Positions 1 to 48,733 are shown, numbered from the stretch's first letter. The stretch is DNA of 48,733 bases from Neoechinorhynchus agilis (GCA_051530055.1 JBMGUZ010000016.1:1-48733); one strand, 5' to 3'. Program-made: numbers and translations. The notes: generated by a model from the letters alone, not told the origin.

Positions 1-639
1 ACGTGGATTGGTTGTGGATTGTACTTCGAGACTAGTGAGATCTTGATAGCTAATCCCACACCATGAAGTTTTGGCTCCGTTGCAACCTTTTTCCTATTCC
101 GAAAGTTGTCCTTCATTGGCCGCCGACAGCCACCACATCAATACCATTCCTTCGGAGCTCCTTTGGAATCAATGCCGTGTGCCGTTCAGATCGATCACAT
201 TTGTCTCTGTCGATTCATGTTCTGATGTTTCAAACAAGAGTCCATAAACTTTGAGAAAAACTTGTTCTTTTCTTTTACGGCCGTAGAGGGATATCACCAA
301 GCTTTTTTAGCCCACATTTTCTAGGGCCTTCTCCAACTTGCCGAGAGCACTGCGACGGCTTGAAAAACTCTGCTCCACATATCCGTAACCACCGAAGTTT
401 TGGCGCCAAGTCATCAAAACAGCGATCATCTTGTGTATACCGCTGATGTCAAGGTCCGGACTAAAGGCTTCCAGGGATTTGGCATCTCGAGCCTTCGTTA
501 TCATTCTCTTATCTCCACCAGACTGAAGAAATGAAGTGAAGTAAAAGAAGACGGTGGAATAGGATCGATGAAGTCTTTGGCGTGATGAGATTTAAGTGAA
601 ATTCTAGCGTCACGCCGTCTTCCACTTGTTTTGCTAGTA

Positions 640-1143
640 AGTTTTCTACCAAGTGTTCCGCCACAGATTGACGCAAAGGCCGTTCAGTTTTGCCTATGTA
701 AATGGACTAGCGATTGTCATCGGCCAAATATCATTCGCATGTCATTTTGTAGACCACGTTGCTTCGAGTGCAAATCAAATCTTGTCGGCTATTTGCGTCC
801 CCGGACTTCCATTGTGCGTACACATCAACGACGATGCTGGATATGTTTCCGGTGTTTCATGATGTCCAGGTCGCGTCAGGATTCGCCCAAGTGTAGTTGC
901 CGTTCTATGGACAATCCGAATATCCATTCCCGATCCATTCAACCGTTTCTCGAGTGCACTTATCGTTCTCTCATTTTCGACGTTTGTAGAGAGCGAAACA
1001 AAATCAAAAGGCATTACCTGGCTACCATTTAAGTCATTGCATCGCGCATTCAGAGAATTAAGTAAACCCTCAACATTCTGCAAAAAATGAACCTGTCCTG
1101 TGAAGCAATGGGCAAATTTTCGTCGCCAAGAAGGGGTCTGCAT
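640..1143 (-). mobile_element. Penelope-like element remnant (RT fragment plus GIY-YIG endonuclease), internally deleted
   Basis: ORF 775-1143 contains an RT-like motif MPFDFVSLSTNV and linker IRIVHRTATTLGRIL. Manual translation of about 652-757 (-) gives NVVYKMTCE*...SIYIGKTERPLRQSVAEH, a GIY-YIG motif with stops. Confidence 0.8.
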
Positions 1144-1693
1144 TTAAGAAAAACGCTGTTGTCAATGTTACCGGACTAACCGGCATCTTGTATTCATTTT
1201 GACCGTTGGGTACATTCCGAACACTCGCAACGGTTCCTTCTTTTCAAATATCTTGCGGCTGTAACTTTACGAAAGATGCTTTTCAACTTTTTGCGCTTCA
1301 ATTCTCAATCATCCTTCGATTCCATCATATATATAAGCGGATCTCGCAGTATTTTCTGCATTTTGATCTCTTATCCACCTTTGTCAATCGAAATCAAATC
1401 ACCGCAATTATCACTCAATGAACGTAATATTGTGATGTTTTATAAAGCTTGTTATAGTGAAGAGAGATTTGCGGAGTACAAGAAAATGCCGTCAAAAGCT
1501 GCTATGCACCATCTTTAATGATGAAATTTGTACTACGGGCGATCCCAAAGGAAAAGATAAACGACTCTAAGGTCAAAAATCACTATTCTATAGGCTTCAT
1601 GATTCTTTCTACAATTCTATTGCTTAACGAAAAATTTAAAAGGGGCAGCTAAAAATGAACTATGTAATATCGCGATTAATAAAACGGGATATT

Positions 1694-1930
1694 TATAATT
1701 TTAATGAACATACTCCCGGTCATAACCTATTCGATTTTGATTTATTGGAAATATTTCGAAGGAGGTAATCCCGCCTCATCAGTCATTGTTTGCAAGTTTT
1801 CAGAAAAAACAAAAGAAAAGGAAAATACTTGCAAACAATGACTGATGAGGCGAGGTTACCTCCTTCGAAATATTTCCAATAAATCAAAATCAAATAGATT
1901 ATGACCGGGAGTATGTTCATTAAAATTATA
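1694..1930. repeat. Foldback hairpin: 104-bp inverted arms (1694-1797 / 1827-1930), 29-nt A-rich loop
   Basis: Direct reading finds 4 mismatches in 104 bp, all transitions. Confidence 0.93.
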
Positions 1931-2032
1931 CTTTGACTTACCCGAAGGATTTTCTATCAATGAAAACTGGATATAGCGGATCAAAGATTTTAAAATCATC
2001 TTTTCTATAAAAAAAGATGTTCATTTTTGTGT

Positions 2033-2097
2033 TCTTTGGTGATGAGAAGAATAGATATTGATTTATCGTTCCCAATATTTCGTGCGTTTCGTCGGAC
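2033..2097. repeat. Half copy of the MITE-like foldback at 27502-27648 (mirror at 46637-46701)
   Basis: tttggtgatgagaagaatagatattgattt...aatatttcgtgcgtttcgtcggac matches ttgggtgataagaaaaataaagattgattt...aatatttcgtccgtttcgtcggac. Confidence 0.7.
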
Positions 2098-2139
2098 CGC
2101 AGGCCTAAAACGCAGAGGTAGGTCATATCCTGAGTTTGT

Positions 2140-2390
2140 AATCAAACGCGTTTCTTTCGTTTATACAAGTTTTCAACTCTGCATAAAATCGACTGCGCAC
2201 TTTGATTCGTAGTTTCGAAACCGTTGTCGATTTGCTCTTTTTTGGGTGTTTTCACAAGAGCTCGAGCATTTCGGCTTATTGAGCTAAACGTGTAAGTTTA
2301 TAAATGGATATTTGGCTTTTAATTGTTCTTTCAATAAGTGTTGTTATAGGGTTGAATTAATCAAATCTCTGAGTCTTGCGAAATATTGAT
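2140..2390. repeat. Diverged copy of a ~270-bp dispersed repeat also found at both inner arm boundaries (mirror about 46344-46594)
   Basis: Shares blocks cgtttctttcg, ccgttgt..gctctttt and tcgagcatttcggctt with 16345-16630 and with the reverse complement of 32100-32390. Confidence 0.7.
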
Positions 2391-3238
2391 ACGCTTTTGA
2401 TAAAAACGGTTCAAATGTCCAAATAAAAATTATGCGGCGAAATTTTACTAGTGAAAACTTAAATTCTGCATTTTCTCCAATGTAAAAATTCGAGTTTGTG
2501 AGCATTGATACTTTTCTGAATTTAGGGCCGTACATGAACATCTTTTTAAAAGACGAAGTATTTCCGTATTAAAGTTTTTCGCCATCATCCGCTTACTGAA
2601 ATTATGTTCACACTTGGAATTGAATTTGACATTTCGATTTTTGAGTAATTTTCTCCTGTTTTTTCTAGAAATAATTCATGATGCAGGAACAAAGCAGAGT
2701 GATGAAATTTAAGCGTTCTTTTTAGCGAAAATGGGCGAAATGGTTGTTCGTAAAAAGAACACTTTTTGGGATTTTCATGAGCAAAACAAAGTGGCGCTTT
2801 TAACATTTTGGACTCATCAAAAATGTCTACCCGCCGAGTTCGCAAAAGCTAACACGCGAAAATTCAAATTATTGCACTTTTAATGAAACTCTACTATGCT
2901 GCAAAATAATTTTTAAAGATTGAACTGGTGAATACCTAATGTTTTATCGCAACGAACACGGGGGGAAGTTAAAGGCATCGAAGGATTGAATCGTGCAATT
3001 ATTGAGCCTCAAAATATTGCTGTAGGTGATGATACGTTGGCCCTAGAGCTTGTGAGATTGAACACATCAACCGCTAAAAAACAAATTTTTTTCAATTCGT
3101 TTGCTTGCAATCAGATTGGATCGTTACTCCAAAATATAAGACGAAAATACATATCTGGGCCTTATTAAATTCTAAAGGATTTCCTCTAAGACGACTCGAA
3201 GCTCTAAGAACATTTTAATAGAAAATTTTAGGCAATCA

Positions 3239-3306
3239 CCGCCGTCAACGATGCCACCACCGCCGTCGACGATGCCACCAGTGCCGTCAACGATGCCACC
3301 AGTGCC
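3239..3306 (+). repeat. 21-nt tandem repeat (3.2 units) at the 5' end of the CRE-like element (mirror 45428-45495)
   Basis: Units ccgccgtcaacgatgccacca / ccgccgtcgacgatgccacca / gtgccgtcaacgatgccacca / gtgcc. Confidence 0.92.
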
Positions 3307-3365
3307 ATCCCCTTGCTGGCCCTCGCTCCGCTCGGGCCGAAATCGATAACCAAACAGACGACCTA

Positions 3366-6308
3366 GTGACGACCAACCCCACGTCAATCACCAGCACCGC
3401 TTCCTCTACGCAACGCGACGAAGTTCCGACCACCCCGAAGTCACCGCCCACCACTTTGAAGCAAGTTGGCACCTCCCAGCATGCCCCATACGTTCCCGCG
3501 ATTTGCCCCTTCTGCGAACGGGAAATACATTTAACAAAGGTTGGCCTATTTAGGGTGCATGGGCCCATTGATTCCCGGTGTCCTGGCTCGTACCAACCTC
3601 TCCCATCTCGGCCGAGCATTCCTGCATCCTTATCTTTATCGCGACCGGCTAAACCTAACGAGAGCTTGTCGCCAAACTGTCAAACCCCATCTTTGGAATC
3701 CCTTTCCCGGGTTTTACCAACAACAATTTTAAAGCACATTCCCAAGGGGACAAGAACCCAGGTGGCACAATCATACACAAATCTATTGCAACCTTGTGCT
3801 GAGAACAATGAGGATATTGATTGGGTAAAACTTTTTGCTTTCCCCCGCCTTGTTCTTAGCTCTAGCAACTCAATATCGGGGAATTTGACATCCAACATTA
3901 AAAATAGGTTAGTGGAGTTCGACGCGAATTTAAAGAGAATGACCCAATCCTCAGCGACTCCCGAAAATTCGTCTAGTAAAAGCCGTAAACAAGGCACAGT
4001 CCGGCCACTGGGTCAACGCGTATCGGCGAAGCTCGCAGACGGGGATGTTCGCGGTGCGGTTCGGCTTCTAGCCTCAACTGAAAATTTTGCGCCAAATCAT
4101 GGCACAACTTTTGAGGCTCTATTAAAGTTGCATCCATCATCGGAGTCGAACTCCACCAATTTTACACCAACTGCTCGGGATTTCCGAGCAAATAGTTTAG
4201 AAATAAGGAAAGCTGTGTCCTCCTTCGCCAATGGCTCAGGACACGGGCCGGATGGCTTGCGTCCACAGCACTTCAAAGACATGATGTCTTTTTCTACAGG
4301 TGCTTCGGGAATAGCCCTCGGAACTGCTTTGCTTAAAATAGTTGATATTTTCATCGAGGGCTCCATTGGCAATTTGGCTACACATATTTTCTTCGGCGCC
4401 TCTTTGTGTGCTTTGTCCAAGAAAGATGGTGGAATTCGTCCCATCGCCATTGGCTGTACTTTGCGTAGGTTAGCCACGAAAGTTTTATGCAGGAGAATCT
4501 CCGATAAAACGGGAGAATTTTTAAGACCCTGTCAGTTAGGTTGCTGCACTCCTTGTTGAGTTGAAGCGGTCGTGCATGCTCTGCGAAAATTTATCCCCCA
4601 AAGAACTAAGCCAACAGCAATTCTGAAAATAGATTTTAAAAATGCTTTCAATACCTTAAAAAGGGAAATAATGTTAAAAGCAATTGAGGATGTCGTCCCA
4701 GAGGCTTACCCTATTTCTGGAGAGCATATGCTAAACATGTCACTGCTGTACAACGACAAAATAATTTGGTCGCAGAGCGGTGCACAACAGGGAGATCCAC
4801 TCGGCCCCATAGGCTTCTCCGCCGCAGTAAATAATCTTGCCCATTCAATGTTTTCTTCTTTCAACGCTTGGTACTTGGACAATTCCACACTCGGTGGCGA
4901 TCCAAGTGTTGTTTTGAGCGACCTTCAAAGGATCGCGAATGAAGCTGACCGCTTGGGAATAGAAGTAAATCCCCAAAAATGCGAACTTCTCATCCTGAAC
5001 GCAACTGAAAACGAGCGCTCTCAAATCTCTAGCGATTTTGAATCAGTTGCTCCTGGTCTAGGTTTGATAATCCTTGACCAGCTCACACTCCTCGGGAGCT
5101 GCGTTCTTGCTGAGAATGTTGCGAAGGACCTGCGCGCACAAATCGCGAAAATGGAGTTGCTCTGCGGCCGAACTTCTGAGCTGTCGGCACATGAGGGTCT
5201 CTTCTTGATCAAGAATTGCCTCTATATGCAGAAATTGCTTCATAAGCTAAGAGCAGCTCCATGTTTCGGAGAAGACAAATTGTTAGGAGAGCTCGGCGGG
5301 GTAATTCGTAAGCGGCTGGGACATAAATTGAATGTCAAATTTTCTAACACAGGTTGGCGACAGGCTACTTTTCCCACGGCTTATGGTGGTTTGGGAGTTC
5401 GCACCACTTCAGACGTCGCTTTACCTGCCTTCCTCTCCTCTTGCCGGGCAAGTAAAGTCTATGTCAATGCCATTTTAGGCACATCAGTGAAGGATTTGGT
5501 CTTTGCCACGGGATTATCTCAATGGCATCAATTGACAGGCATCAACCAGCTCCCCGCAAATGAGTGCAAACAGTCGTCTTGAGACATTCCTCTTGTTCAG
5601 AAGATTCACAACTCTTTCAAAGATCTTCTGGATGAGGTGTCTCAGGTCCGGCTGGTAGCCTGTTCCACGAAGGAGCCGGGAGCGTGGCTGAATGCTCTCC
5701 CTGTAGGTAAATTTGGAAATCTCCTTGCTGACTCAGTCGTCAGGATCGCAGTATCCTTGAGATTAGGTCTACCGATTTGCATCCCGCATCGCTGCCGCTG
5801 CGGCACTAGTGGACTCTTCGGGGAGACACGATCTCATATGCAAGACGTCATCGGGACGATTTCCAAGGCATGCTGAAATCAATGCCATTCCGAGTAGGAC
5901 TCTAAAAACGCTTTCCCTTCCAAACAATCTAGAACCCGCTAATCTTTGTAGACCGTATTTCCTTGGCGGGAGGGAAAATGTTTGTTGTGGGATGCAACGT
6001 GTGTGGACACGGTGGCAAACTCCAACATCAGCCACTCGAAAAAAGGTCCAGGAGGAGCGGCGACGGCTGCAGAGGATCGGAAATGCTCAAAATACAGGGA
6101 GCTAAAAAGAAATTACCATTTTGTCCCCTTCGGTGTGGAAACGTATGTGGCCTTGGGAGGGTCGGCGCTAGCCCTCCTGAAGGACTTGGGGAAACGAATC
6201 AACGCGGCGACTGGAGAGCCAAGATCGACGTCGTTCTTGGCGCAAAAAATAAGCATTGCGGTGCAGCGGGGCAATGCGGCCAGCATTTTGGCCAGCGCCG
6301 ATGAATAG
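3366..6308 (+). pseudogene. Disrupted single ORF (Zn motif-RT-RLE) of the CRE-like element
   Basis: ORFs 3366-4559, 4572-5582 and 5637-5876 are in one frame separated by single TGA stops; 5809-6105 and 5982-6308 continue after frameshifts. Catalytic YLDD reads YLDN. Confidence 0.88.
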
Positions 6309-7739
6309 GAGCGTTGAAGAAACTATAAATTATGTATGCTTGCTTAAAAAAAACCCTTTCGTAAAAAAAATTTTTAAATTAAATAAACAATATTACGAAT
6401 ACTGAACTAAGCATTAAGTGGAGAAAGTGCGCTATTTATTAGCAGGATTAAATTGTAGGTATAAATTTTTTCTTTAAATAAAATTCTGTATTATATTGAT
6501 AAAACTGCAATATCGAATTAAACAAGTGCGTTTTTACAATGTGAATTCAAAAATTATGTTCAATAACCAATATTTAATCGGTAGCAAACAATTAAATCCT
6601 TTACCCATTGAACCTAATTTAGTATCTTCTTTTTTAATTATACGCCTTCGAAATTTAGAAAACACGTTGAAGTGGCTTTAAGGGAGCGGCGGCCCTGAAT
6701 TCGTAGAAAAGAAAGATGGCGAGAAGAAGACAGACGAGAAGCTTCATTCGGATTGAAAGTGAAGCTCGAATGAACTCCATTTATACTCCTGTTTGTTTTC
6801 ACGAAAATATTCTATTTTCCCGATACAAAACCGTGATCGAATAGCAACATCAAAATAGATTTCAACTCGAAAACACTCTTCAAGTAAACTGCTTCGTTGA
6901 AAAACGGAGAAGACGAGTAAGCAAAAAAGAGTTTTGCAATTGTGGTACATTTGTACGTGGATGTTTTTCGCTCATTGAACTAAAAAAACTGTAAAATGTC
7001 ATCCTGCCACATAGAATATTTTCGAATTCAGCCTCATAACGCTAATTTCCATTGAACAAACACCATTTGAGATTGTAAAAGTAAGTTTATGCAAATATTT
7101 TGAGGATTTTAAGAGTGTTAGAATCAGTGCTGTCGATGCTTAACAAATAATGTTTCAAACAATAAAACATAAGACATAGAAACGGGAATACAAATTTAAC
7201 TTTAGAACATTGAATCGGTAGTATCCATGATGTTGCTTCCAATAACCTTTTATGACACTCAAGGTTAAGATACTTTAATGAAACTAACTTTTTGGGAATT
7301 TAGTCAAAAATATATTTTGCAGACAGCGAATGGAAATGGATAGGATGAGTTGTATTTATTTCATTAGGAGGCAGCGGTTTGAACGATTACTGTCAGGTTT
7401 TCCAAGGCCCGTCGCCTTTCGATAGATTGCCTTCAAAGGATCCGAAAATCGGAAAACGTTCGAATAACCCAATGTCAAACACAAAGAGTTCATTTTCTTT
7501 TGGTAGTATTGTCACCCCGGATTTAGATTCACTGATTTATTTCCGACATTTCGACGGAAAATTCCGACATTATCAAGGTTTGCCATTGCTTGTAAGTTTT
7601 TTTAACATACATAAAATTTCGGAATTATCCGACGAAATATCGGGGAAATAAATTAGTTTATTAAAATGCCCAGGGTGGTAAAATTAAAAAAAAAGTTTCT
7701 TTTCCTGCGAGAATAATAATCCACGACGCAATAACACAT

Positions 7740-10530
7740 TTTATTTGTTAATGTAAGGGGACCAGTGTATCTTTTGGTCTTCATAAACACTCGAGTTCTG
7801 ATTTGATAAATAAATCTGGGTATTGATTTTGGAGTGGATTACGAGTCCGTGCGGGTGGGAATATCACGTCGGGTTGGAAGGCCCGTTCTTGTGGGGGGAT
7901 TGGCGGTTATAGCTTGCAGGAACGCTTGTAGGTTGGTATTTCCTCAAGTTCATTTCAGATTGGTGAAAAAATCCTTTATGTGTGTGTGTGTGATTTATAA
8001 TAATAACACGTTAAGGAAAGGGAGAGGTGGGGTGGTCAATGGGTGATGAGGGTGATATCATCGGCATATAAGAAAAGCTTTGAGAAAGAGGAAAGAAGTT
8101 GAAGGTCGTCTAAGAAAATATTAAAAAGAAGTAGTGACAGAACAGCACCTTGAGGTACGCCTTAGGTGAGGGATAGGCTGATAGAAGAGGTAGAACGGCA
8201 GTGAATGTATTGTTTGCGATTGTAAAGATTAGATTCAAGCCAGCGGATCTGCTACAAGTTGAGACCAAAATCGGAGAAGGAGTGAATGGTCCACGGAGTA
8301 GAATGCATTCAATAAATCCTGTTAAATGATACGGGTGAATTGGGAGGGATTATTGTCGAGGTTTCGTAGGAGCGTATCATAAATGCAAAGTAGGGCATCG
8401 GTTGCAGAAAATTTGGGCCGGAAACGAATTGAATGGATGAAATTTTTCGATTGAAGGTTGGCAGAAGGTGTGCTTTAAAGCATCTCTCCAAGACTTTAGA
8501 GAATGAAGGTAAGAAAGAGATGGGTCGAAAACTTGAGGTGCATATAAGTTTAGATGCTTTCAGGAGCAGGATTACCCGATCTGTTTTAAGGCGACTAGGG
8601 AAGATTCCGGTCTTGAAACTTCTATTGATTATATGGGTAAGTGAATCAAATAAATCTGGGATGATAAAGCGTAGAGTTCAGTTGTGAATGAGAGAGTTAG
8701 GGGATGATTTGCGAGGTAGTTTCCGAAGAAGCATGAGAATATCATACTTGGAAATCATGAGAGGTGAAGCTGTAGAAACTGAGAACGGTGGTGTAGATAT
8801 GGAAGGGGATGACTATTTGTTTGTGTTCGAATGACAGTCGCAAAGTTGCACATTGATAGGGTTTAGTGCATCAAGGAGGTCGGAGTTTGAAAGTTTGGAA
8901 GGGCGCTTTTCGTGTTTTTCCACGAGAGGTTAGTGGGGGAGGAGGCGAATTTATGTGCAAGAAAGGTATTGCGCGAGTTGAGAATGTGGTGCACCAGCGA
9001 GGATTGAAGGCAGCTCAAATCAGGATTGCATGGATGGTATGTTTTATTCGCCTTTATTTGTAGCATTTTCAAGAAAGGACACTTCCAAAGTGGATCTCGG
9101 CTGGAAAAGCGAATGGTTTTCTTAGGAATAGCTGTTATCATGCAAAAGGAGAATATATTAATTAGAGAAAGCATAACTTTCGAGGCGTTCGGGTGAAAAA
9201 TTGATTTTCTGTGTGAAGAGAGATTACGCGAGACCAATTTCGTGAGTGGGAACGTTGAGGATTAGCGGAAGGAGGGAGGATTATTTGGGAATGGCCAGAG
9301 GATAAGATTCGAGGTAAGTCGTTTTCGTCATTTTTGTTCCGAATACGATTTGTATTTTGTGACTTCATGGAACTTTTTATTACTAAGTTCAATGTCCCAG
9401 CTCGCAGCCGGTGGAGGTCGTGTTCATAAGGCTGGCATAGTTCCTATCTTTTTCCTCAACATCGCTTATAAATCATTTATTGTCTCTGGCTTTAAAATGG
9501 CAATTTCACAATTTTTTGTAAGACGACCCTAACTTCAATGGTTCAGAATCGTAGCTTTAACAACCCATCCTCAGCACAGAAGCAACATTTTTGGGTTCTA
9601 TTGGGACAGTTTTGATTCCAGTGTCGCCACTGTAGGCATATGTGGCATTGTGGGTACACGAGATTTGATTCTGTATTTGAATTTTTTGTAAATGTGATTT
9701 CCATACACTGGAATATCCATTTGCGGGAGCAAAGAGTTTCCATTTTATCCATGTCAATTTCAACTATTCCCACTGGAATTGCCTTTCCCGTCTTCCTGGA
9801 TTTGAAGAAAAATTTAATCTCAAAGTCTTGAATCGTATCAGGCGAAGATAAACTCCCAATGTTGTGAGCAATGAAAGTTGCTTTGTTGCGGAAGGATTGA
9901 ATGTTGGAATTTTTTCGTCGTGCCGACCGTTCACAAAGGATTCGAAATCGTCCATTTCAGTGTTGTTGACGAAGACAATTTTTAAAGTACCATTCCAGAA
10001 TGAAGTTGATCTGATTCTTAGTATACTATCCTTCTTTGTTTTCAGCCATGGTTTGAGGAAACATCCCCATGTGGCTTCCTTTGATGCGATTGGAATCGCA
10101 GATATTTTGGTTACGTAATCGTCCTTTTTAACGGGCCGATCGAAGTATATAATTTTGTATGTATCACCTATTGAAGTTTGAAGCTTTGTGGGTGGCCGTG
10201 TGTCACCCTCTGAACGATCACTTAGAAGGTGCCTCCGTATGTCCGGAGGTACCTTAATTTTCAGTGAATTGGATTGCCGTATGCTATCCTCCGTCGCAAC
10301 ACTTGGTGGTTGCGAAAACATTCTGGATATTAGTTCCGCAGTGGTGGCCCGTGCAAAAAACACAGGGCACACTATTGATTTTAGTGCCGCTACAACACTA
10401 GTTGGCAATGACCGGCGTTTCGAACGTATTATCATCGAAGCCTTATATATAAATAGGTTCGAAACGTTCGAGGACAATAAACTTGATTTCAAATTAAGGA
10501 TGCGACTCCCACCGGATGTATTGTGACGCG
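7740..10530 (-). mobile_element. Decayed APE-group LINE (CR1/L2/jockey-like): ORF1 with CCHC knuckles plus broken RT
   Basis: ORF1 9764-10492 is followed by frameshifted knuckles QCHICLQWRHWNQNC..KCCFC (9543-9773). RT remnants read in the mirror copy: FKTGIFPSRLK, FRPISFLPSFSKVLE, GVPQGAVLSLLLFNIFLDD, LYADD (8057-8068). AATAAA tail near 7745. Confidence 0.82.
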
Positions 10531-12100
10531 TGAATTGAGAATCCCTGTGTATAAATAGAACAAAACCTAAAAAGATGTCTTATTTTGAAGGCCTTACACA
10601 TCGCTGAGTCCAACACAATGGAAGGAAATAAAGCTAATTATAGCTTGAAACTTCAGCCAGCAACGTGTTAAAAATCAATACTAAAATCATGGAAAAACGT
10701 ATCGAGCGGATAATTGGCCCCGAACTTCCGGTTTGGCAGTTTCCCCGAAGGATTTTCAATCGATGATTGTAGATGCTTTATCTAAGAATGACCTTCAACA
10801 TTTTGGTCTGTCGCTTGATAATGAGAGCATTATAATTTGTTTAAAAATTATATTCATATACATATCAAAAGAAGGCAGCATTGAGGACATCAATCCACGG
10901 TTAAGTTTACCTGTCTTCAAATGAAGGGAAGTGAAGCATTTTCTGAATCAACAGTGTTCAAAAGTTTTTATCCAAATTTTTTTCTAAGTACGGATATGCA
11001 TTTGATTACAAAGCTACGCAGCAATACTCTGAAATAAATTGGTATAAAATTCATAAGAACGTTAGAATTCAATCTTTCTTAAAAAATTTTCCGAAACAAA
11101 GTGTTAATATTTGATTTTTGCCGAAGCCACGTCATTTTTTTGGACATTAAATCATTCACACCACCGTCCTGTATTTGCAATTCAATTTCTCCATTTTGAC
11201 AAGAAAAACGAGAAATTTTAGGGGATGTATTCGTTAATTTTTCATTGCCTACTTATCATCGAATCGAACAGTTTTCATCCTCGATTATATTCTTGTCAAA
11301 TAATGATTAAATTCGAAGCATAATTTGCAATCGATAAAACCTTGGTTTTAGCCATGAAACCATTGAGACTATTTGATTCTCAACTCAGCTTTGATGACCG
11401 ATCGCTCTTGATGCTCTGACTAGCATTTCATTTCTGTGATTTACCAATGAATATAATGGTGCGTTGGGAACAACCAATTGAAGTAAGCGATCTGAAAATT
11501 AACATAAACAAAGCGAAAATCGTTTTTAATTTAGGAAGTGTATGAAGCAGGTTTAGTCACAAGAAAATTACAAATAACTCATTTTATAAATTTCCCCTCT
11601 GGAAATTGACTTAGAATACCTTCAAGAAAATAAAATTAAAGAGAATTCATGTTGTCAATCTGGATAATTATATTTTCATGAAGAACAAGAATCCGGTTTT
11701 ATTGGTTTTAGATGCCAAAAGTTTCACTTACCGGCTTAACTTTTGATATTTAGCTCATATTTAAACTTTAGTTTAAATACAAGATAATATTTTTCATAGA
11801 CATTTGAAGTAATCGTTTCCAAAAACTTTAATACATCCAATTATTTAAAATATGGCCTTTTAAACAACTTTAAAAAATCAGTTTAATTTTAGAATTCACG
11901 CCTACTATATAACTGTGCTAACAGCTGAAAATATGCCTAAAAGAATAATTTGTTTTTGGGAATTCATAGAATCGAGAATTTACGTGTGACGTGCGGAAGG
12001 TTTCGCTCATCGATGAAGAAAATCCTTGACCGGAGTCGTACCTTCCACTACTAGTTCATTTGAAGATCTTCTAAACTCACATCGCAAATCCAAACAGTCT

Positions 12101-12905
12101 TTATTTTAAATCGCACATTTCATTTTTAATTTTATTAATCGCTTCAAGACATCTTGTAGCCCTTTCAACATCACTTTCTTGCGATTGAGATAGATCCCGG
12201 ATTGTAGCAAGTGCGCAGATCTTAAGTTCCATTAATGTTTTACGACACTTCTGCGAACTTTCCTTTAGATCTTCTAATGCCTCATTTCGCTCAACCGTAG
12301 GACTCGACTTGTGGTCATTCATCAGTTGTTCAAAACGACTACGAGTTTGAGCAAGAAATTCTAAGAATAATTGGATTGCGACAAGCACACATAAAAACTG
12401 AAAATTTCTACTAACCTATCGTCTTCGCCGTCAACTGTTCAATTTCTCTAACCAGTTTTCTATTGCTCTCAAGTTGGTCTTTATGATGAGAGACTACGCA
12501 GTTTTGGCAGGCACTTCGATTGTAATGGAAGCATAAATCCAAGGCAGCATTTTCGCATGAATCACACTTCTTTGGAGATTGAATTTCAATCGGTTTTAAC
12601 TCGATCAAAGTAGCTGCACGATGATTGCGATATAAAACATCGCTTGGCTTTCCGTTCAGGTTAAATACTCTACGGCAACAAGGACACGATATCCGACGCT
12701 CGTTTTCTACAATTTTCTCAATGCATTGACAACAGAAGGTATGACAACAAGGAAGAGCACGCGGATCTTTAAACGTATCTAAACAGATTGGGCATGTTCG
12801 AAGATCCTCAAGTTGATCTTCGAGGAAAATCTTTAGGGGCCCAACGTCCTTAGGAGCAGGACTAATAACGCTAAATTTATTCGCCGTTGGTGTGTTTGGA
12901 TCCAT
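12101..12905 (-). CDS. TRIM/RBCC-like protein (RING, B-box, coiled coil), 2 exons (12416-12905, 12101-12360), 249 aa
   Basis: C3HC4 RING CPIC-x11-C-x-H-x2-C-x2-C...CPCC; B-box-like CDSC..CFHY..CQNC..H; helical C-terminus. The two track ORFs are joined in frame by a 55-nt GT-AG intron at 12361-12415. Confidence 0.85.
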
Positions 12906-17115: not shown

Positions 17116-17162
17116 GTGGATGACGGAACCGGTGTGGATGACGGATCCGGAGTGGATGACGG
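17116..17162 (+). repeat. 18-nt tandem repeat (2.6 units)
   Basis: gtggatgacggaaccggt / gtggatgacggatccgga / gtggatgacgg; a degenerate copy lies at about 17864-17900. Confidence 0.85.
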
Positions 17163-36633: not shown

Positions 36634-38203
36634 AGACTGTTTGGATTTGCGATGTGAGTTTAGAAGATCTTCAAATGAACTAGTAGTGGAAGGTACGACT
36701 CCGGTCAAGGATTTTCTTCATCGATGAGCGAAACCTTCCGCACGTCACACGTAAATTCTCGATTCTATGAATTCCCAAAAACAAATTATTCTTTTAGGCA
36801 TATTTTCAGCTGTTAGCACAGTTATATAGTAGGCGTGAATTCTAAAATTAAACTGATTTTTTAAAGTTGTTTAAAAGGCCATATTTTAAATAATTGGATG
36901 TATTAAAGTTTTTGGAAACGATTACTTCAAATGTCTATGAAAAATATTATCTTGTATTTAAACTAAAGTTTAAATATGAGCTAAATATCAAAAGTTAAGC
37001 CGGTAAGTGAAACTTTTGGCATCTAAAACCAATAAAACCGGATTCTTGTTCTTCATGAAAATATAATTATCCAGATTGACAACATGAATTCTCTTTAATT
37101 TTATTTTCTTGAAGGTATTCTAAGTCAATTTCCAGAGGGGAAATTTATAAAATGAGTTATTTGTAATTTTCTTGTGACTAAACCTGCTTCATACACTTCC
37201 TAAATTAAAAACGATTTTCGCTTTGTTTATGTTAATTTTCAGATCGCTTACTTCAATTGGTTGTTCCCAACGCACCATTATATTCATTGGTAAATCACAG
37301 AAATGAAATGCTAGTCAGAGCATCAAGAGCGATCGGTCATCAAAGCTGAGTTGAGAATCAAATAGTCTCAATGGTTTCATGGCTAAAACCAAGGTTTTAT
37401 CGATTGCAAATTATGCTTCGAATTTAATCATTATTTGACAAGAATATAATCGAGGATGAAAACTGTTCGATTCGATGATAAGTAGGCAATGAAAAATTAA
37501 CGAATACATCCCCTAAAATTTCTCGTTTTTCTTGTCAAAATGGAGAAATTGAATTGCAAATACAGGACGGTGGTGTGAATGATTTAATGTCCAAAAAAAT
37601 GACGTGGCTTCGGCAAAAATCAAATATTAACACTTTGTTTCGGAAAATTTTTTAAGAAAGATTGAATTCTAACGTTCTTATGAATTTTATACCAATTTAT
37701 TTCAGAGTATTGCTGCGTAGCTTTGTAATCAAATGCATATCCGTACTTAGAAAAAAATTTGGATAAAAACTTTTGAACACTGTTGATTCAGAAAATGCTT
37801 CACTTCCCTTCATTTGAAGACAGGTAAACTTAACCGTGGATTGATGTCCTCAATGCTGCCTTCTTTTGATATGTATATGAATATAATTTTTAAACAAATT
37901 ATAATGCTCTCATTATCAAGCGACAGACCAAAATGTTGAAGGTCATTCTTAGATAAAGCATCTACAATCATCGATTGAAAATCCTTCGGGGAAACTGCCA
38001 AACCGGAAGTTCGGGGCCAATTATCCGCTCGATACGTTTTTCCATGATTTTAGTATTGATTTTTAACACGTTGCTGGCTGAAGTTTCAAGCTATAATTAG
38101 CTTTATTTCCTTCCATTGTGTTGGACTCAGCGATGTGTAAGGCCTTCAAAATAAGACATCTTTTTAGGTTTTGTTCTATTTATACACAGGGATTCTCAAT
38201 TCA

Positions 38204-40994
38204 CGCGTCACAATACATCCGGTGGGAGTCGCATCCTTAATTTGAAATCAAGTTTATTGTCCTCGAACGTTTCGAACCTATTTATATATAAGGCTTCGAT
38301 GATAATACGTTCGAAACGCCGGTCATTGCCAACTAGTGTTGTAGCGGCACTAAAATCAATAGTGTGCCCTGTGTTTTTTGCACGGGCCACCACTGCGGAA
38401 CTAATATCCAGAATGTTTTCGCAACCACCAAGTGTTGCGACGGAGGATAGCATACGGCAATCCAATTCACTGAAAATTAAGGTACCTCCGGACATACGGA
38501 GGCACCTTCTAAGTGATCGTTCAGAGGGTGACACACGGCCACCCACAAAGCTTCAAACTTCAATAGGTGATACATACAAAATTATATACTTCGATCGGCC
38601 CGTTAAAAAGGACGATTACGTAACCAAAATATCTGCGATTCCAATCGCATCAAAGGAAGCCACATGGGGATGTTTCCTCAAACCATGGCTGAAAACAAAG
38701 AAGGATAGTATACTAAGAATCAGATCAACTTCATTCTGGAATGGTACTTTAAAAATTGTCTTCGTCAACAACACTGAAATGGACGATTTCGAATCCTTTG
38801 TGAACGGTCGGCACGACGAAAAAATTCCAACATTCAATCCTTCCGCAACAAAGCAACTTTCATTGCTCACAACATTGGGAGTTTATCTTCGCCTGATACG
38901 ATTCAAGACTTTGAGATTAAATTTTTCTTCAAATCCAGGAAGACGGGAAAGGCAATTCCAGTGGGAATAGTTGAAATTGACATGGATAAAATGGAAACTC
39001 TTTGCTCCCGCAAATGGATATTCCAGTGTATGGAAATCACATTTACAAAAAATTCAAATACAGAATCAAATCTCGTGTACCCACAATGCCACATATGCCT
39101 ACAGTGGCGACACTGGAATCAAAACTGTCCCAATAGAACCCAAAAATGTTGCTTCTGTGCTGAGGATGGGTTGTTAAAGCTACGATTCTGAACCATTGAA
39201 GTTAGGGTCGTCTTACAAAAAATTGTGAAATTGCCATTTTAAAGCCAGAGACAATAAATGATTTATAAGCGATGTTGAGGAAAAAGATAGGAACTATGCC
39301 AGCCTTATGAACACGACCTCCACCGGCTGCGAGCTGGGACATTGAACTTAGTAATAAAAAGTTCCATGAAGTCACAAAATACAAATCGTATTCGGAACAA
39401 AAATGACGAAAACGACTTACCTCGAATCTTATCCTCTGGCCATTCCCAAATAATCCTCCCTCCTTCCGCTAATCCTCAACGTTCCCACTCACGAAATTGG
39501 TCTCGCGTAATCTCTCTTCACACAGAAAATCAATTTTTCACCCGAACGCCTCGAAAGTTATGCTTTCTCTAATTAATATATTCTCCTTTTGCATGATAAC
39601 AGCTATTCCTAAGAAAACCATTCGCTTTTCCAGCCGAGATCCACTTTGGAAGTGTCCTTTCTTGAAAATGCTACAAATAAAGGCGAATAAAACATACCAT
39701 CCATGCAATCCTGATTTGAGCTGCCTTCAATCCTCGCTGGTGCACCACATTCTCAACTCGCGCAATACCTTTCTTGCACATAAATTCGCCTCCTCCCCCA
39801 CTAACCTCTCGTGGAAAAACACGAAAAGCGCCCTTCCAAACTTTCAAACTCCGACCTCCTTGATGCACTAAACCCTATCAATGTGCAACTTTGCGACTGT
39901 CATTCGAACACAAACAAATAGTCATCCCCTTCCATATCTACACCACCGTTCTCAGTTTCTACAGCTTCACCTCTCATGATTTCCAAGTATGATATTCTCA
40001 TGCTTCTTCGGAAACTACCTCGCAAATCATCCCCTAACTCTCTCATTCACAACTGAACTCTACGCTTTATCATCCCAGATTTATTTGATTCACTTACCCA
40101 TATAATCAATAGAAGTTTCAAGACCGGAATCTTCCCTAGTCGCCTTAAAACAGATCGGGTAATCCTGCTCCTGAAAGCATCTAAACTTATATGCACCTCA
40201 AGTTTTCGACCCATCTCTTTCTTACCTTCATTCTCTAAAGTCTTGGAGAGATGCTTTAAAGCACACCTTCTGCCAACCTTCAATCGAAAAATTTCATCCA
40301 TTCAATTCGTTTCCGGCCCAAATTTTCTGCAACCGATGCCCTACTTTGCATTTATGATACGCTCCTACGAAACCTCGACAATAATCCCTCCCAATTCACC
40401 CGTATCATTTAACAGGATTTATTGAATGCATTCTACTCCGTGGACCATTCACTCCTTCTCCGATTTTGGTCTCAACTTGTAGCAGATCCGCTGGCTTGAA
40501 TCTAATCTTTACAATCGCAAACAATACATTCACTGCCGTTCTACCTCTTCTATCAGCCTATCCCTCACCTAAGGCGTACCTCAAGGTGCTGTTCTGTCAC
40601 TACTTCTTTTTAATATTTTCTTAGACGACCTTCAACTTCTTTCCTCTTTCTCAAAGCTTTTCTTATATGCCGATGATATCACCCTCATCACCCATTGACC
40701 ACCCCACCTCTCCCTTTCCTTAACGTGTTATTATTATAAATCACACACACACACATAAAGGATTTTTTCACCAATCTGAAATGAACTTGAGGAAATACCA
40801 ACCTACAAGCGTTCCTGCAAGCTATAACCGCCAATCCCCCCACAAGAACGGGCCTTCCAACCCGACGTGATATTCCCACCCGCACGGACTCGTAATCCAC
40901 TCCAAAATCAATACCCAGATTTATTTATCAAATCAGAACTCGAGTGTTTATGAAGACCAAAAGATACACTGGTCCCCTTACATTAACAAATAAA
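38204..40994 (+). mobile_element. Decayed APE-group LINE (mirror copy)
   Basis: Mirror of 7740-10530; YADD codons at 40666-40677. Confidence 0.82.
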
Positions 40995-42353
40995 ATGTGT
41001 TATTGCGTCGTGGATTATTATTCTCGCAGGAAAAGAAACTTTTTTTTTAATTTTACCACCCTGGGCATTTTAATAAACTAATTTATTTCCCCGATATTTC
41101 GTCGGATAATTCCGAAATTTTATGTATGTTAAAAAAACTTACAAGCAATGGCAAACCTTGATAATGTCGGAATTTTCCGTCGAAATGTCGGAAATAAATC
41201 AGTGAATCTAAATCCGGGGTGACAATACTACCAAAAGAAAATGAACTCTTTGTGTTTGACATTGGGTTATTCGAACGTTTTCCGATTTTCGGATCCTTTG
41301 AAGGCAATCTATCGAAAGGCGACGGGCCTTGGAAAACCTGACAGTAATCGTTCAAACCGCTGCCTCCTAATGAAATAAATACAACTCATCCTATCCATTT
41401 CCATTCGCTGTCTGCAAAATATATTTTTGACTAAATTCCCAAAAAGTTAGTTTCATTAAAGTATCTTAACCTTGAGTGTCATAAAAGGTTATTGGAAGCA
41501 ACATCATGGATACTACCGATTCAATGTTCTAAAGTTAAATTTGTATTCCCGTTTCTATGTCTTATGTTTTATTGTTTGAAACATTATTTGTTAAGCATCG
41601 ACAGCACTGATTCTAACACTCTTAAAATCCTCAAAATATTTGCATAAACTTACTTTTACAATCTCAAATGGTGTTTGTTCAATGGAAATTAGCGTTATGA
41701 GGCTGAATTCGAAAATATTCTATGTGGCAGGATGACATTTTACAGTTTTTTTAGTTCAATGAGCGAAAAACATCCACGTACAAATGTACCACAATTGCAA
41801 AACTCTTTTTTGCTTACTCGTCTTCTCCGTTTTTCAACGAAGCAGTTTACTTGAAGAGTGTTTTCGAGTTGAAATCTATTTTGATGTTGCTATTCGATCA
41901 CGGTTTTGTATCGGGAAAATAGAATATTTTCGTGAAAACAAACAGGAGTATAAATGGAGTTCATTCGAGCTTCACTTTCAATCCGAATGAAGCTTCTCGT
42001 CTGTCTTCTTCTCGCCATCTTTCTTTTCTACGAATTCAGGGCCGCCGCTCCCTTAAAGCCACTTCAACGTGTTTTCTAAATTTCGAAGGCGTATAATTAA
42101 AAAAGAAGATACTAAATTAGGTTCAATGGGTAAAGGATTTAATTGTTTGCTACCGATTAAATATTGGTTATTGAACATAATTTTTGAATTCACATTGTAA
42201 AAACGCACTTGTTTAATTCGATATTGCAGTTTTATCAATATAATACAGAATTTTATTTAAAGAAAAAATTTATACCTACAATTTAATCCTGCTAATAAAT
42301 AGCGCACTTTCTCCACTTAATGCTTAGTTCAGTATTCGTAATATTGTTTATTT

Positions 42354-45300
42354 AATTTAAAAATTTTTTTTACGAAAGGGTTTTTTTTAAGCAAGCATAC
42401 ATAATTTATAGTTTCTTCAACGCTCCTATTCATCGGCGCTGGCCAAAATGCTGGCCGCATTGCCCCGCTGCACCGCAATGCTTATTTTTTGCGCCAAGAA
42501 CGACGTCGATCTTGGCTCTCCAGTCGCCGCGTTGATTCGTTTCCCCAAGTCCTTCAGGAGGGCTAGCGCCGACCCTCCCAAGGCCACATACGTTTCCACA
42601 CCGAAGGGGACAAAATGGTAATTTCTTTTTAGCTCCCTGTATTTTGAGCATTTCCGATCCTCTGCAGCCGTCGCCGCTCCTCCTGGACCTTTTTTCGAGT
42701 GGCTGATGTTGGAGTTTGCCACCGTGTCCACACACGTTGCATCCCACAACAAACATTTTCCCTCCCGCCAAGGAAATACGGTCTACAAAGATTAGCGGGT
42801 TCTAGATTGTTTGGAAGGGAAAGCGTTTTTAGAGTCCTACTCGGAATGGCATTGATTTCAGCATGCCTTGGAAATCGTCCCGATGACGTCTTGCATATGA
42901 GATCGTGTCTCCCCGAAGAGTCCACTAGTGCCGCAGCGGCAGCGATGCGGGATGCAAATCGGTAGACCTAATCTCAAGGATACTGCGATCCTGACGACTG
43001 AGTCAGCAAGGAGATTTCCAAATTTACCTACAGGGAGAGCATTCAGCCACGCTCCCGGCTCCTTCGTGGAACAGGCTACCAGCCGGACCTGAGACACCTC
43101 ATCCAGAAGATCTTTGAAAGAGTTGTGAATCTTCTGAACAAGAGGAATGTCTCAAGACGACTGTTTGCACTCATTTGCGGGGAGCTGGTTGATGCCTGTC
43201 AATTGATGCCATTGAGATAATCCCGTGGCAAAGACCAAATCCTTCACTGATGTGCCTAAAATGGCATTGACATAGACTTTACTTGCCCGGCAAGAGGAGA
43301 GGAAGGCAGGTAAAGCGACGTCTGAAGTGGTGCGAACTCCCAAACCACCATAAGCCGTGGGAAAAGTAGCCTGTCGCCAACCTGTGTTAGAAAATTTGAC
43401 ATTCAATTTATGTCCCAGCCGCTTACGAATTACCCCGCCGAGCTCTCCTAACAATTTGTCTTCTCCGAAACATGGAGCTGCTCTTAGCTTATGAAGCAAT
43501 TTCTGCATATAGAGGCAATTCTTGATCAAGAAGAGACCCTCATGTGCCGACAGCTCAGAAGTTCGGCCGCAGAGCAACTCCATTTTCGCGATTTGTGCGC
43601 GCAGGTCCTTCGCAACATTCTCAGCAAGAACGCAGCTCCCGAGGAGTGTGAGCTGGTCAAGGATTATCAAACCTAGACCAGGAGCAACTGATTCAAAATC
43701 GCTAGAGATTTGAGAGCGCTCGTTTTCAGTTGCGTTCAGGATGAGAAGTTCGCATTTTTGGGGATTTACTTCTATTCCCAAGCGGTCAGCTTCATTCGCG
43801 ATCCTTTGAAGGTCGCTCAAAACAACACTTGGATCGCCACCGAGTGTGGAATTGTCCAAGTACCAAGCGTTGAAAGAAGAAAACATTGAATGGGCAAGAT
43901 TATTTACTGCGGCGGAGAAGCCTATGGGGCCGAGTGGATCTCCCTGTTGTGCACCGCTCTGCGACCAAATTATTTTGTCGTTGTACAGCAGTGACATGTT
44001 TAGCATATGCTCTCCAGAAATAGGGTAAGCCTCTGGGACGACATCCTCAATTGCTTTTAACATTATTTCCCTTTTTAAGGTATTGAAAGCATTTTTAAAA
44101 TCTATTTTCAGAATTGCTGTTGGCTTAGTTCTTTGGGGGATAAATTTTCGCAGAGCATGCACGACCGCTTCAACTCAACAAGGAGTGCAGCAACCTAACT
44201 GACAGGGTCTTAAAAATTCTCCCGTTTTATCGGAGATTCTCCTGCATAAAACTTTCGTGGCTAACCTACGCAAAGTACAGCCAATGGCGATGGGACGAAT
44301 TCCACCATCTTTCTTGGACAAAGCACACAAAGAGGCGCCGAAGAAAATATGTGTAGCCAAATTGCCAATGGAGCCCTCGATGAAAATATCAACTATTTTA
44401 AGCAAAGCAGTTCCGAGGGCTATTCCCGAAGCACCTGTAGAAAAAGACATCATGTCTTTGAAGTGCTGTGGACGCAAGCCATCCGGCCCGTGTCCTGAGC
44501 CATTGGCGAAGGAGGACACAGCTTTCCTTATTTCTAAACTATTTGCTCGGAAATCCCGAGCAGTTGGTGTAAAATTGGTGGAGTTCGACTCCGATGATGG
44601 ATGCAACTTTAATAGAGCCTCAAAAGTTGTGCCATGATTTGGCGCAAAATTTTCAGTTGAGGCTAGAAGCCGAACCGCACCGCGAACATCCCCGTCTGCG
44701 AGCTTCGCCGATACGCGTTGACCCAGTGGCCGGACTGTGCCTTGTTTACGGCTTTTACTAGACGAATTTTCGGGAGTCGCTGAGGATTGGGTCATTCTCT
44801 TTAAATTCGCGTCGAACTCCACTAACCTATTTTTAATGTTGGATGTCAAATTCCCCGATATTGAGTTGCTAGAGCTAAGAACAAGGCGGGGGAAAGCAAA
44901 AAGTTTTACCCAATCAATATCCTCATTGTTCTCAGCACAAGGTTGCAATAGATTTGTGTATGATTGTGCCACCTGGGTTCTTGTCCCCTTGGGAATGTGC
45001 TTTAAAATTGTTGTTGGTAAAACCCGGGAAAGGGATTCCAAAGATGGGGTTTGACAGTTTGGCGACAAGCTCTCGTTAGGTTTAGCCGGTCGCGATAAAG
45101 ATAAGGATGCAGGAATGCTCGGCCGAGATGGGAGAGGTTGGTACGAGCCAGGACACCGGGAATCAATGGGCCCATGCACCCTAAATAGGCCAACCTTTGT
45201 TAAATGTATTTCCCGTTCGCAGAAGGGGCAAATCGCGGGAACGTATGGGGCATGCTGGGAGGTGCCAACTTGCTTCAAAGTGGTGGGCGGTGACTTCGGG

Positions 45301-45512
45301 GTGGTCGGAACTTCGTCGCGTTGCGTAGAGGAAGCGGTGCTGGTGATTGACGTGGGGTTGGTCGTCACTAGGTCGTCTGTTTGGTTATCGATTTCGGCCC
45401 GAGCGGAGCGAGGGCCAGCAAGGGGATGGCACTGGTGGCATCGTTGACGGCACTGGTGGCATCGTCGACGGCGGTGGTGGCATCGTTGACGGCGGTGATT
45501 GCCTAAAATTTT
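42354..45512 (-). mobile_element. RLE-type (CRE-like) non-LTR retrotransposon, mirror copy
   Basis: ORFs 44175-45368, 43152-44162, 42858-43097 and 42426-42752 translate identically to the left-arm ORFs. Confidence 0.88.
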
Positions 45513-46803
45513 CTATTAAAATGTTCTTAGAGCTTCGAGTCGTCTTAGAGGAAATCCTTTAGAATTTAATAAGGCCCAGATATGTATTTTCGTCTTATAT
45601 TTTGGAGTAACGATCCAATCTGATTGCAAGCAAACGAATTGAAAAAAATTTGTTTTTTAGCGGTTGATGTGTTCAATCTCACAAGCTCTAGGGCCAACGT
45701 ATCATCACCTACAGCAATATTTTGAGGCTCAATAATTGCACGATTCAATCCTTCGATGCCTTTAACTTCCCCCCGTGTTCGTTGCGATAAAACATTAGGT
45801 ATTCACCAGTTCAATCTTTAAAAATTATTTTGCAGCATAGTAGAGTTTCATTAAAAGTGCAATAATTTGAATTTTCGCGTGTTAGCTTTTGCGAACTCGG
45901 CGGGTAGACATTTTTGATGAGTCCAAAATGTTAAAAGCGCCACTTTGTTTTGCTCATGAAAATCCCAAAAAGTGTTCTTTTTACGAACAACCATTTCGCC
46001 CATTTTCGCTAAAAAGAACGCTTAAATTTCATCACTCTGCTTTGTTCCTGCATCATGAATTATTTCTAGAAAAAACAGGAGAAAATTACTCAAAAATCGA
46101 AATGTCAAATTCAATTCCAAGTGTGAACATAATTTCAGTAAGCGGATGATGGCGAAAAACTTTAATACGGAAATACTTCGTCTTTTAAAAAGATGTTCAT
46201 GTACGGCCCTAAATTCAGAAAAGTATCAATGCTCACAAACTCGAATTTTTACATTGGAGAAAATGCAGAATTTAAGTTTTCACTAGTAAAATTTCGCCGC
46301 ATAATTTTTATTTGGACATTTGAACCGTTTTTATCAAAAGCGTATCAATATTTCGCAAGACTCAGAGATTTGATTAATTCAACCCTATAACAACACTTAT
46401 TGAAAGAACAATTAAAAGCCAAATATCCATTTATAAACTTACACGTTTAGCTCAATAAGCCGAAATGCTCGAGCTCTTGTGAAAACACCCAAAAAAGAGC
46501 AAATCGACAACGGTTTCGAAACTACGAATCAAAGTGCGCAGTCGATTTTATGCAGAGTTGAAAACTTGTATAAACGAAAGAAACGCGTTTGATTACAAAC
46601 TCAGGATATGACCTACCTCTGCGTTTTAGGCCTGCGGTCCGACGAAACGCACGAAATATTGGGAACGATAAATCAATATCTATTCTTCTCATCACCAAAG
46701 AACACAAAAATGAACATCTTTTTTTATAGAAAAGATGATTTTAAAATCTTTGATCCGCTATATCCAGTTTTCATTGATAGAAAATCCTTCGGGTAAGTCA
46801 AAG

Positions 46804-47040
46804 TATAATTTTAATGAACATACTCCCGGTCATAATCTATTTGATTTTGATTTATTGGAAATATTTCGAAGGAGGTAACCTCGCCTCATCAGTCATTGTT
46901 TGCAAGTATTTTCCTTTTCTTTTGTTTTTTCTGAAAACTTGCAAACAATGACTGATGAGGCGGGATTACCTCCTTCGAAATATTTCCAATAAATCAAAAT
47001 CGAATAGGTTATGACCGGGAGTATGTTCATTAAAATTATA
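46804..47040. repeat. Foldback hairpin (mirror copy)
   Basis: Mirror of 1694-1930. Confidence 0.93.
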
Positions 47041-47590
47041 AATATCCCGTTTTATTAATCGCGATATTACATAGTTCATTTTTAGCTGCCCCTTTTAAAT
47101 TTTTCGTTAAGCAATAGAATTGTAGAAAGAATCATGAAGCCTATAGAATAGTGATTTTTGACCTTAGAGTCGTTTATCTTTTCCTTTGGGATCGCCCGTA
47201 GTACAAATTTCATCATTAAAGATGGTGCATAGCAGCTTTTGACGGCATTTTCTTGTACTCCGCAAATCTCTCTTCACTATAACAAGCTTTATAAAACATC
47301 ACAATATTACGTTCATTGAGTGATAATTGCGGTGATTTGATTTCGATTGACAAAGGTGGATAAGAGATCAAAATGCAGAAAATACTGCGAGATCCGCTTA
47401 TATATATGATGGAATCGAAGGATGATTGAGAATTGAAGCGCAAAAAGTTGAAAAGCATCTTTCGTAAAGTTACAGCCGCAAGATATTTGAAAAGAAGGAA
47501 CCGTTGCGAGTGTTCGGAATGTACCCAACGGTCAAAATGAATACAAGATGCCGGTTAGTCCGGTAACATTGACAACAGCGTTTTTCTTAA

Positions 47591-48094
47591 ATGCAGACCC
47601 CTTCTTGGCGACGAAAATTTGCCCATTGCTTCACAGGACAGGTTCATTTTTTGCAGAATGTTGAGGGTTTACTTAATTCTCTGAATGCGCGATGCAATGA
47701 CTTAAATGGTAGCCAGGTAATGCCTTTTGATTTTGTTTCGCTCTCTACAAACGTCGAAAATGAGAGAACGATAAGTGCACTCGAGAAACGGTTGAATGGA
47801 TCGGGAATGGATATTCGGATTGTCCATAGAACGGCAACTACACTTGGGCGAATCCTGACGCGACCTGGACATCATGAAACACCGGAAACATATCCAGCAT
47901 CGTCGTTGATGTGTACGCACAATGGAAGTCCGGGGACGCAAATAGCCGACAAGATTTGATTTGCACTCGAAGCAACGTGGTCTACAAAATGACATGCGAA
48001 TGATATTTGGCCGATGACAATCGCTAGTCCATTTACATAGGCAAAACTGAACGGCCTTTGCGTCAATCTGTGGCGGAACACTTGGTAGAAAACT
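47591..48094 (+). mobile_element. Penelope-like element remnant (mirror copy)
   Basis: Mirror of 640-1143; GIY-YIG VVYKMTC at about 47977 and YIGKTER at about 48034. Confidence 0.8.
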
Positions 48095-48733
48095 TACTAG
48101 CAAAACAAGTGGAAGACGGCGTGACGCTAGAATTTCACTTAAATCTCATCACGCCAAAGACTTCATCGATCCTATTCCACCGTCTTCTTTTACTTCACTT
48201 CATTTCTTCAGTCTGGTGGAGATAAGAGAATGATAACGAAGGCTCGAGATGCCAAATCCCTGGAAGCCTTTAGTCCGGACCTTGACATCAGCGGTATACA
48301 CAAGATGATCGCTGTTTTGATGACTTGGCGCCAAAACTTCGGTGGTTACGGATATGTGGAGCAGAGTTTTTCAAGCCGTCGCAGTGCTCTCGGCAAGTTG
48401 GAGAAGGCCCTAGAAAATGTGGGCTAAAAAAGCTTGGTGATATCCCTCTACGGCCGTAAAAGAAAAGAACAAGTTTTTCTCAAAGTTTATGGACTCTTGT
48501 TTGAAACATCAGAACATGAATCGACAGAGACAAATGTGATCGATCTGAACGGCACACGGCATTGATTCCAAAGGAGCTCCGAAGGAATGGTATTGATGTG
48601 GTGGCTGTCGGCGGCCAATGAAGGACAACTTTCGGAATAGGAAAAAGGTTGCAACGGAGCCAAAACTTCATGGTGTGGGATTAGCTATCAAGATCTCACT
48701 AGTCTCGAAGTACAATCCACAACCAATCCACGT

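Follow-up and report, generated by a model that had tools for sequence, protein, structure and literature searches.

A palindromic contig, probably a product of assembly

The window analysed here is the whole stretch of 48,733 bp that makes up the record JBMGUZ010000016.1, an unplaced contig in the assembly GCA_051530055.1 of Neoechinorhynchus agilis (Acanthocephala). It has the form of a giant spaced palindrome in which two arms, each with one gene for a RING-finger protein, surround a spacer filled with retroelement debris. The assembly comprises 102 sequences, three of which hold 94% of its 46.2 Mb, so that the window counts among the small sequences left unplaced.

Comparison of the window with its own reverse complement pairs each position i with the complement of position 48734-i throughout 1-16449, with 0 mismatches and 0 indels. 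An earlier description made from the sequence alone (the original prediction) had proposed such a palindrome, and its geometry is confirmed in full. The arms, called apparently identical, gave 0 differences in a direct base comparison and the first mismatch lies at 16450; both arms extend to the window edges (1 and 48733), and the spacer, put at 15.8 kb, measures 15,835 bp (16450-32284). Compared with its own reverse complement, the spacer gives 24-28% matches, which is the random level. For a perfect inverted match of 16,449 bp chance is no candidate. The three parts are as follows, where A and B denote the assembly-graph edges to which we assign them below.

1-16449, plus strand: left arm, repeat edge A written forward, a perfect reverse complement of 32285-48733
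16450-32284, no strand: spacer, the presumed unique edge B, with debris of Penelope-like elements and long interspersed nuclear elements (LINEs)
32285-48733, minus strand: right arm, the same edge A written reversed

The RING-finger protein is recorded at three places, namely in both arms and in a further unplaced contig, JBMGUZ010000043.1 (23,056 bp). The comparison with this contig covers 14,349 of its 23,056 bases. Over these, its positions 1-14349 equal window 32285-46633 with 100.000% identity, 0 mismatches and 0 gaps, and left-arm positions 2101-16449 are likewise 100.000% identical to its positions 14349-1. Base 1 of JBMGUZ010000043.1 corresponds to window 32285, the exact inner boundary of the arm, and from there the contig runs outward through the arm. 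It exceeds the arm length by 6,607 bp, which makes it very probable that the sequence runs on beyond the edge of the window. The open reading frames (ORFs) of window 1-1650 were searched for an annotated gene near the outer end of the arm and gave no match, and a 32-mer from the arm end is absent from viral, GTDB-genome and JGI-metagenome contig collections.

Probable origin of the palindrome in contig writing

According to the available part of the assembly report (PMC12690905), contigs were built with MaSuRCA 4.0.9 in hybrid mode with FLYE_ASSEMBLY=1, which means that Flye assembled the corrected long reads. The same part of the report states that the Oxford Nanopore (ONT) DNA came from a pool of ~50 worms, that Illumina reads and a little HiFi were added, and that contigs were processed further with purge_dups, instaGRAAL and TGS-GapCloser; the depth amounts to ~90x for ONT and roughly 370x for Illumina (17.157 Gbp, PMC12690905, over the 46.2 Mb of the assembly). 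A Flye contig consists of one unique edge and possibly several repeat edges (Flye preprint). Repetitive edges are those that reach a coverage of at least 2x the mean or lead to several successors, each backed by a read fraction above a threshold, whereas a unique edge has a single successor only (Flye preprint).

We hold with good confidence that the palindromic form is a product of the contig writing of the assembler and that the arms are one consensus printed several times. In the Flye repeat graph, the unique 15.8-kb edge B (16450-32284) would enter the same 16,449-bp edge A at both ends, in opposite orientations. Edge A would have been classed as repetitive and left unresolved by Flye, and the contig for B would have been output as A, B and the reverse complement of A. 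A neighbouring unique edge would have been output as the reverse complement of A followed by ~6.6 kb, its extension ending at the node beside B. The identity of the arms, the third copy starting at the boundary base, the assembler and its contig-writing rule are directly established, and from them we infer the exact graph path.

One consensus printed several times yields both zero differences and ends on the same base. The original prediction had named the unrolling of a collapsed repeat into such a contig as one possibility, and this is supported by the third printing of the arm in another contig from the exact boundary base. It had also pointed out that arms ending on the same base are what an assembler artefact predicts; this pattern is indeed present and fits the Flye finish with its contig-writing rule. 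An assembler that writes out repeat edges, the same arm in a second contig at the same node base, and arms that are base-identical up to the contig ends are all found together. Contigs built by Flye around a unique edge have the same anatomy: a unique middle, base-identical opposite flanks that stop at nodes, and a flank that is reprinted in a neighbouring contig starting on the node. They differ from the present case in that the path is read here from printed contigs only.

Some points weigh against this explanation. The path A, B, -A was derived from the printed contigs rather than from Flye output files, and two things are assumed of JBMGUZ010000043.1, namely that it stays colinear along the outermost 2.1 kb of the arm and that its additional 6.6 kb have the nature supposed here. 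In addition, the contigs passed through purge_dups, instaGRAAL and TGS-GapCloser after Flye and might have been changed there, and purge_dups left the redundancy standing, which is slightly unexpected for a single-copy arm.

Identity that arises by construction reveals neither how old a duplication is nor whether gene conversion took place. The stop codons and frameshifts of dead transposons are common to both arms, as the original prediction had stated (for example, the LINE at 3222-6305 is mirrored at 42429-45512), but this is a trivial consequence of the identity and does not permit the conclusion that the transposons decayed before the duplication or last homogenisation. The perfect palindrome with arms ending at the window edges is no feature of the biology, although an ordinary inverted repeat that Flye left unresolved may underlie it. 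Under the graph, A could be truly present twice as an inverted repeat flanking B, whose true identity and length would not be given by the printed arms, or one of the A-B joins could be absent from any single chromosome.

A different kind of artefact is a foldback chimera formed during amplification or library preparation. Whole-genome amplification is known to introduce artificial inverted duplications into assemblies (PMC6218980), and foldback reads occur in ONT data (PMC12870357). However, the available part of the assembly methods, in which no dedicated search for the term was made, mentions no amplification; it describes column or Puregene extraction of the DNA, a PCR-free Illumina library, and standard ONT and HiFi libraries (PMC12690905). 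Foldback artefacts join the two strands of one fragment and are essentially spacerless (PMC12870357), whereas the spacer here has 15.8 kb. Furthermore, Flye filters out weakly supported successors. A foldback chimera, which the original prediction had listed, is thus extremely improbable.

Genes and retroelement remnants

The density of ORFs is low across the window, and only RVT_1, GIY-YIG and RING matches exceed the Pfam threshold. A bacterial, phage or plasmid origin was discarded in view of this low density, the lack of tRNA and Rfam matches and a plasmid search that gave nothing. The coding remnants belong to degraded non-LTR retrotransposons and Penelope-like elements. The following genes and remnants were recognised.

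12101-12905, minus strand: RING-finger (TRIM-like) gene ACOME3_010504, 249 amino acids, one short intron, matching Pfam RING families (locus L002)
35829-36633, plus strand: mirror copy of the RING-finger gene (locus L001)
3222-6305, mirrored at 42429-45512, plus strand: degraded LINE in the arm with an in-frame stop and frameshifts, RVT_1 at 4572-5582 (plus strand)
20164-21016, minus strand: RVT_1 ORF in the spacer
23585-25798, plus strand: RVT_1 ORF in the spacer with a weak, sub-threshold endonuclease match (E=0.012)
16800-17162, minus strand: GIY-YIG ORF in the spacer beside the left arm boundary (Pfam E=2.8e-5)

The RING ORF of the window is 100% identical to the N. agilis protein ACOME3_010504 (P0153), and its nearest solved relatives are the RING domains of TRIM2/3/21. 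Two gene tables, which cover the spacer outside 22906-25828, contain no annotated spacer gene; the RING gene of the arms is the only gene listed. In an exhaustive protein search the relatives of the LINE ORF2 were only ~30-55% identical, and the named ones come from the acanthocephalans Pomphorhynchus laevis and Neoechinorhynchus agilis. A word-indexed protein search with the same ORF2 found nothing at E<=1e-10. Look-ups of exact products returned no record for the LINE ORF, for the ORF-only form of the RING protein or for an ORF near the window end.

A second GIY-YIG remnant was read by eye at ~560-760 on the minus strand, and together with the one at 16800-17162 it suggests, at the level of sequence, Penelope-like retroelements. 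The 5' end of the degraded LINE contains a 21-bp tandem repeat of 3.1 copies (3241-3306, mirrored at 45428-45493), which encodes a proline/serine/threonine-rich repeat. Each arm also has a MITE-like (miniature inverted-repeat transposable element) foldback element, a 237-bp hairpin with 87% self-complementarity at 1694-1930 (mirrored at 46804-47040). Two LINEs of the spacer, at 19151-23224 (minus strand) and 23585-25798 (plus strand), are related, diverged and arranged head to head, with weak inverted matches of 70-75%. This pair lies off-centre relative to the symmetry axis of the window.

This inventory bears on the proposal that the window ends are true ends, either of an extrachromosomal linear palindrome or of a giant mobile element with terminal inverted repeats of 16 kb. 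The arms do reach both ends. In addition, an acentric palindrome could conceivably be freed when inverted repeats close to a chromosome end undergo exchange. However, the window ends show no telomere-like or tandem repeats, and in the window there are no rRNA or tRNA genes and no Rfam family. Neither a polymerase nor a transposase or replication gene is present among the degraded retroelements and the one RING gene, and JBMGUZ010000043.1 is 6,607 bp longer than the arm. With the palindromic rDNA minichromosomes of Tetrahymena and Dictyostelium and with linear elements with long terminal inverted repeats the window shares the A-B-A' shape only; it differs from them in having no rDNA, telomeres or replication genes and in a sequence that very probably runs past its end. 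The linear element of the original prediction is therefore exceedingly improbable, and a free palindromic molecule in the form of an acentric, hairpin-like fragment released from a chromosome end is very doubtful as well.

The RING-segment family at the arm boundary and the copy number of the arm

The inverted homology does not stop with the perfect arms. In a self-BLAST it continues past 16449, though interrupted by mismatches and indels, and reaches 16608 at the left boundary and 32118 at the right one. The two margins are 74.5% identical over 165 columns (E=1.4e-26, BLAST with the spacer only) or 78.5% identical over the aligned columns (MAFFT). These margins belong to longer segments with relatives elsewhere in the genome, at a locus on chromosome CM121343.1 (L004).

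11478-16608, minus strand: left copy of a ~5.5-kb duplicated segment U with the RING gene, truncated at 16608 beside a Penelope-like element
16450-16608, plus strand: left inner margin, distal part of a boundary segment r, 82-86% identical to two chromosome paralogues
31656-37256, plus strand: segment U, right copy, whose colinearity with the chromosome paralogues runs unbroken across the boundary at 32285
32118-32284, minus strand: right inner margin, partner of 16450-16608, 88% identical to the chromosome paralogue L004-I
2149-2330, mirrored at 46404-46585, plus strand: older copy of boundary segment r inside the arm, roughly 72%

The chromosome carries two DNA copies, 88-93% identical, of the segment matching window 31656-37256, and it encodes a 91% paralogue of the RING protein. 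The right copy of U (31656-37256) aligns with L004 6169-12948 and 17276-18979 at 86-93%, and the left copy gives BLAST matches of 88-93% to L004 6279-12948 and 17720-18979. On the arm side of the boundary (244 bp) the margins are 100% alike and each is 90-92% identical to the chromosome copies. On the spacer side (~160 bp) the margins are 75-78% alike and each is 75-88% identical to the chromosome copies. Judged from these alignments, the margins represent different old members of one ~5.5-kb family, inverted and 15.8 kb apart, and one of the two arm-spacer joins must have arisen as a hybrid, by one switch within the shared homology. The identical tract of 16.4 kb reaches 11 kb past the family segment, and old paralogy can therefore not account for the collapse.

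Two other readings of the boundary were discarded. The boundary segment is not a simple SINE (short interspersed nuclear element) or MITE, for the chromosome paralogues are colinear on both its sides. The assumption that the right junction is ancestral and the left one novel was dropped as well: both are colinear with the family, and only the contrast of 100% with 75-78% marks a hybrid.

Several peculiarities of the family members may be recorded here. About 214 bp of the right margin (31901-32114) are absent from both chromosome paralogues, by insertion here or deletion there. The region of the RING gene at L004:8439-12948 is partly tandem-duplicated; window 35409-36878 matches it twice, and as a result the annotated paralogue (P0154) extends over 2.3 kb. 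At L004:4759-5823 on the plus strand (CM121343.1 ~2.330 Mb), some 350 bp upstream of a paralogue of the RING segment, an ORF of 354 amino acids matches Pfam RdRP_1, the family of picorna-like viral RNA-dependent RNA polymerases (E=1.1e-25), and appears to be an endogenous viral fragment that received an annotation as a host gene.

The sharp boundary also bears on another of the earlier proposals, a long-lived palindrome of the mammalian Y type in which gene conversion between the arms would preserve their identity. Like the conversion palindromes of mammalian sex chromosomes, the window has gene-bearing arms, here with the RING-finger gene in each, around a unique spacer. It differs from them in that its identity is printed and its locus is a small unplaced contig. 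Perfect identity by construction is not a measured arm-to-arm value, and with it this proposal loses its support. Moreover, the abrupt step from 100% to 75-78% within one short segment resembles a single breakpoint without a conversion gradient, and the chromosome paralogues of the family, at 88-93%, are not homogenised. Conversion is thus quite improbable.

The anatomy of the breakpoint fits a known mechanism, a switch inside inverted, 75-78% homologous segments of one family. Template switching, fold-back priming and exchange between nearby inverted repeats are expected to leave such a footprint. Inverted duplications at pre-existing inverted repeats include the fusion of nearby repeats in yeast, the human DUP-TRP/INV-DUP rearrangements and isodicentric Y chromosomes arising from palindromes. 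Here, too, the change from identical to diverged sequence lies inside an old inverted homologous pair, 15.8 kb apart, where such events break; unlike in those systems, the second arm copy is known from printed sequence only and a second outer flank was not found. If the duplication is real, it was most likely a homology-guided event between two paralogues, by template switching, fold-back priming or unequal exchange. If it is not, the same homology would be the site where a false or polymorphic join would form.

We give an even chance to a real and recent inverted duplication, with two physical copies of the arm, one on each side of the spacer, which the assembler simply collapsed and printed again; such a duplication agrees with the contig-writing explanation and bears solely on the underlying copy number. 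By the Flye rules, the unique edge B needs a single successor at each end, and both are A. Edge A is repetitive only by a coverage of at least 2x or by two well-supported successors, so that both joins should be substantially read-supported at ~90x ONT. The breakpoint within pre-existing inverted homology is what a homology-guided inverted duplication predicts, and the identical 16.4-kb tract outruns the 5.5-kb family segment by 11 kb. The redundancy also survived purge_dups, which the same part of the report lists (PMC12690905). On the other hand, one outer flank was found (JBMGUZ010000043.1, 1-14349 compared), whereas two different flanks are expected, and the look-up of the RING protein gave three places only.

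It is possible, but somewhat unlikely, that the arm is single-copy and that one join is real in no single chromosome. Such a join could stem from an inversion of the spacer in part of the pool of ~50 worms, from MaSuRCA mega-reads tiled with the wrong paralogue, or from chimeric molecules that supplied the link. The pooling of ~50 worms for the ONT DNA, as given in the available part of the report (PMC12690905), agrees with this, and so do margins that are only 75-78% alike and yet join an identical arm, which makes one join a hybrid. Inversion by exchange between inverted paralogues would yield exactly such hybrid joins, and family members that are 88-93% alike come near the raw ONT error range. 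However, under an inversion polymorphism each end of B has two successors (A and the other flank), and B would then fail to qualify as a unique edge with A added on both sides. The Illumina depth of ~370x makes an absence of correct super-reads unlikely, the threshold that Flye sets on the read fraction of each successor argues against rare chimeras, and in the protein collection no further RING-gene paralogue turned up that could fit the missing flank.

Well-supported joins at both ends and a spacer without a rival neighbour speak against rare chimeric reads as well as against a simple inversion polymorphism, and on the Flye edge rules a real inverted repeat is moderately favoured. The chances are about equal that in N. 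agilis the 15.8-kb spacer is surrounded by a very young inverted duplication with a length of at least 16.4 kb (perhaps 23 kb or more), which would have arisen by a homology-guided switch between two old inverted copies of the RING segment.

The main lesson is one of caution: where a perfect giant palindrome takes up an entire small contig of an assembly finished by Flye, it should be read as one repeat edge printed twice and not as evidence for a recent duplication or conversion. For users of GCA_051530055.1 this means that the 16.4-kb arm with its RING-finger gene occurs in triplicate within 72 kb of unplaced sequence, and that counts of genes and repeats are inflated as a result. Should the arm prove to be double in N. 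agilis, the locus would offer a clear case of inverted duplication with its breakpoint inside old inverted paralogues, which is useful rather than surprising.

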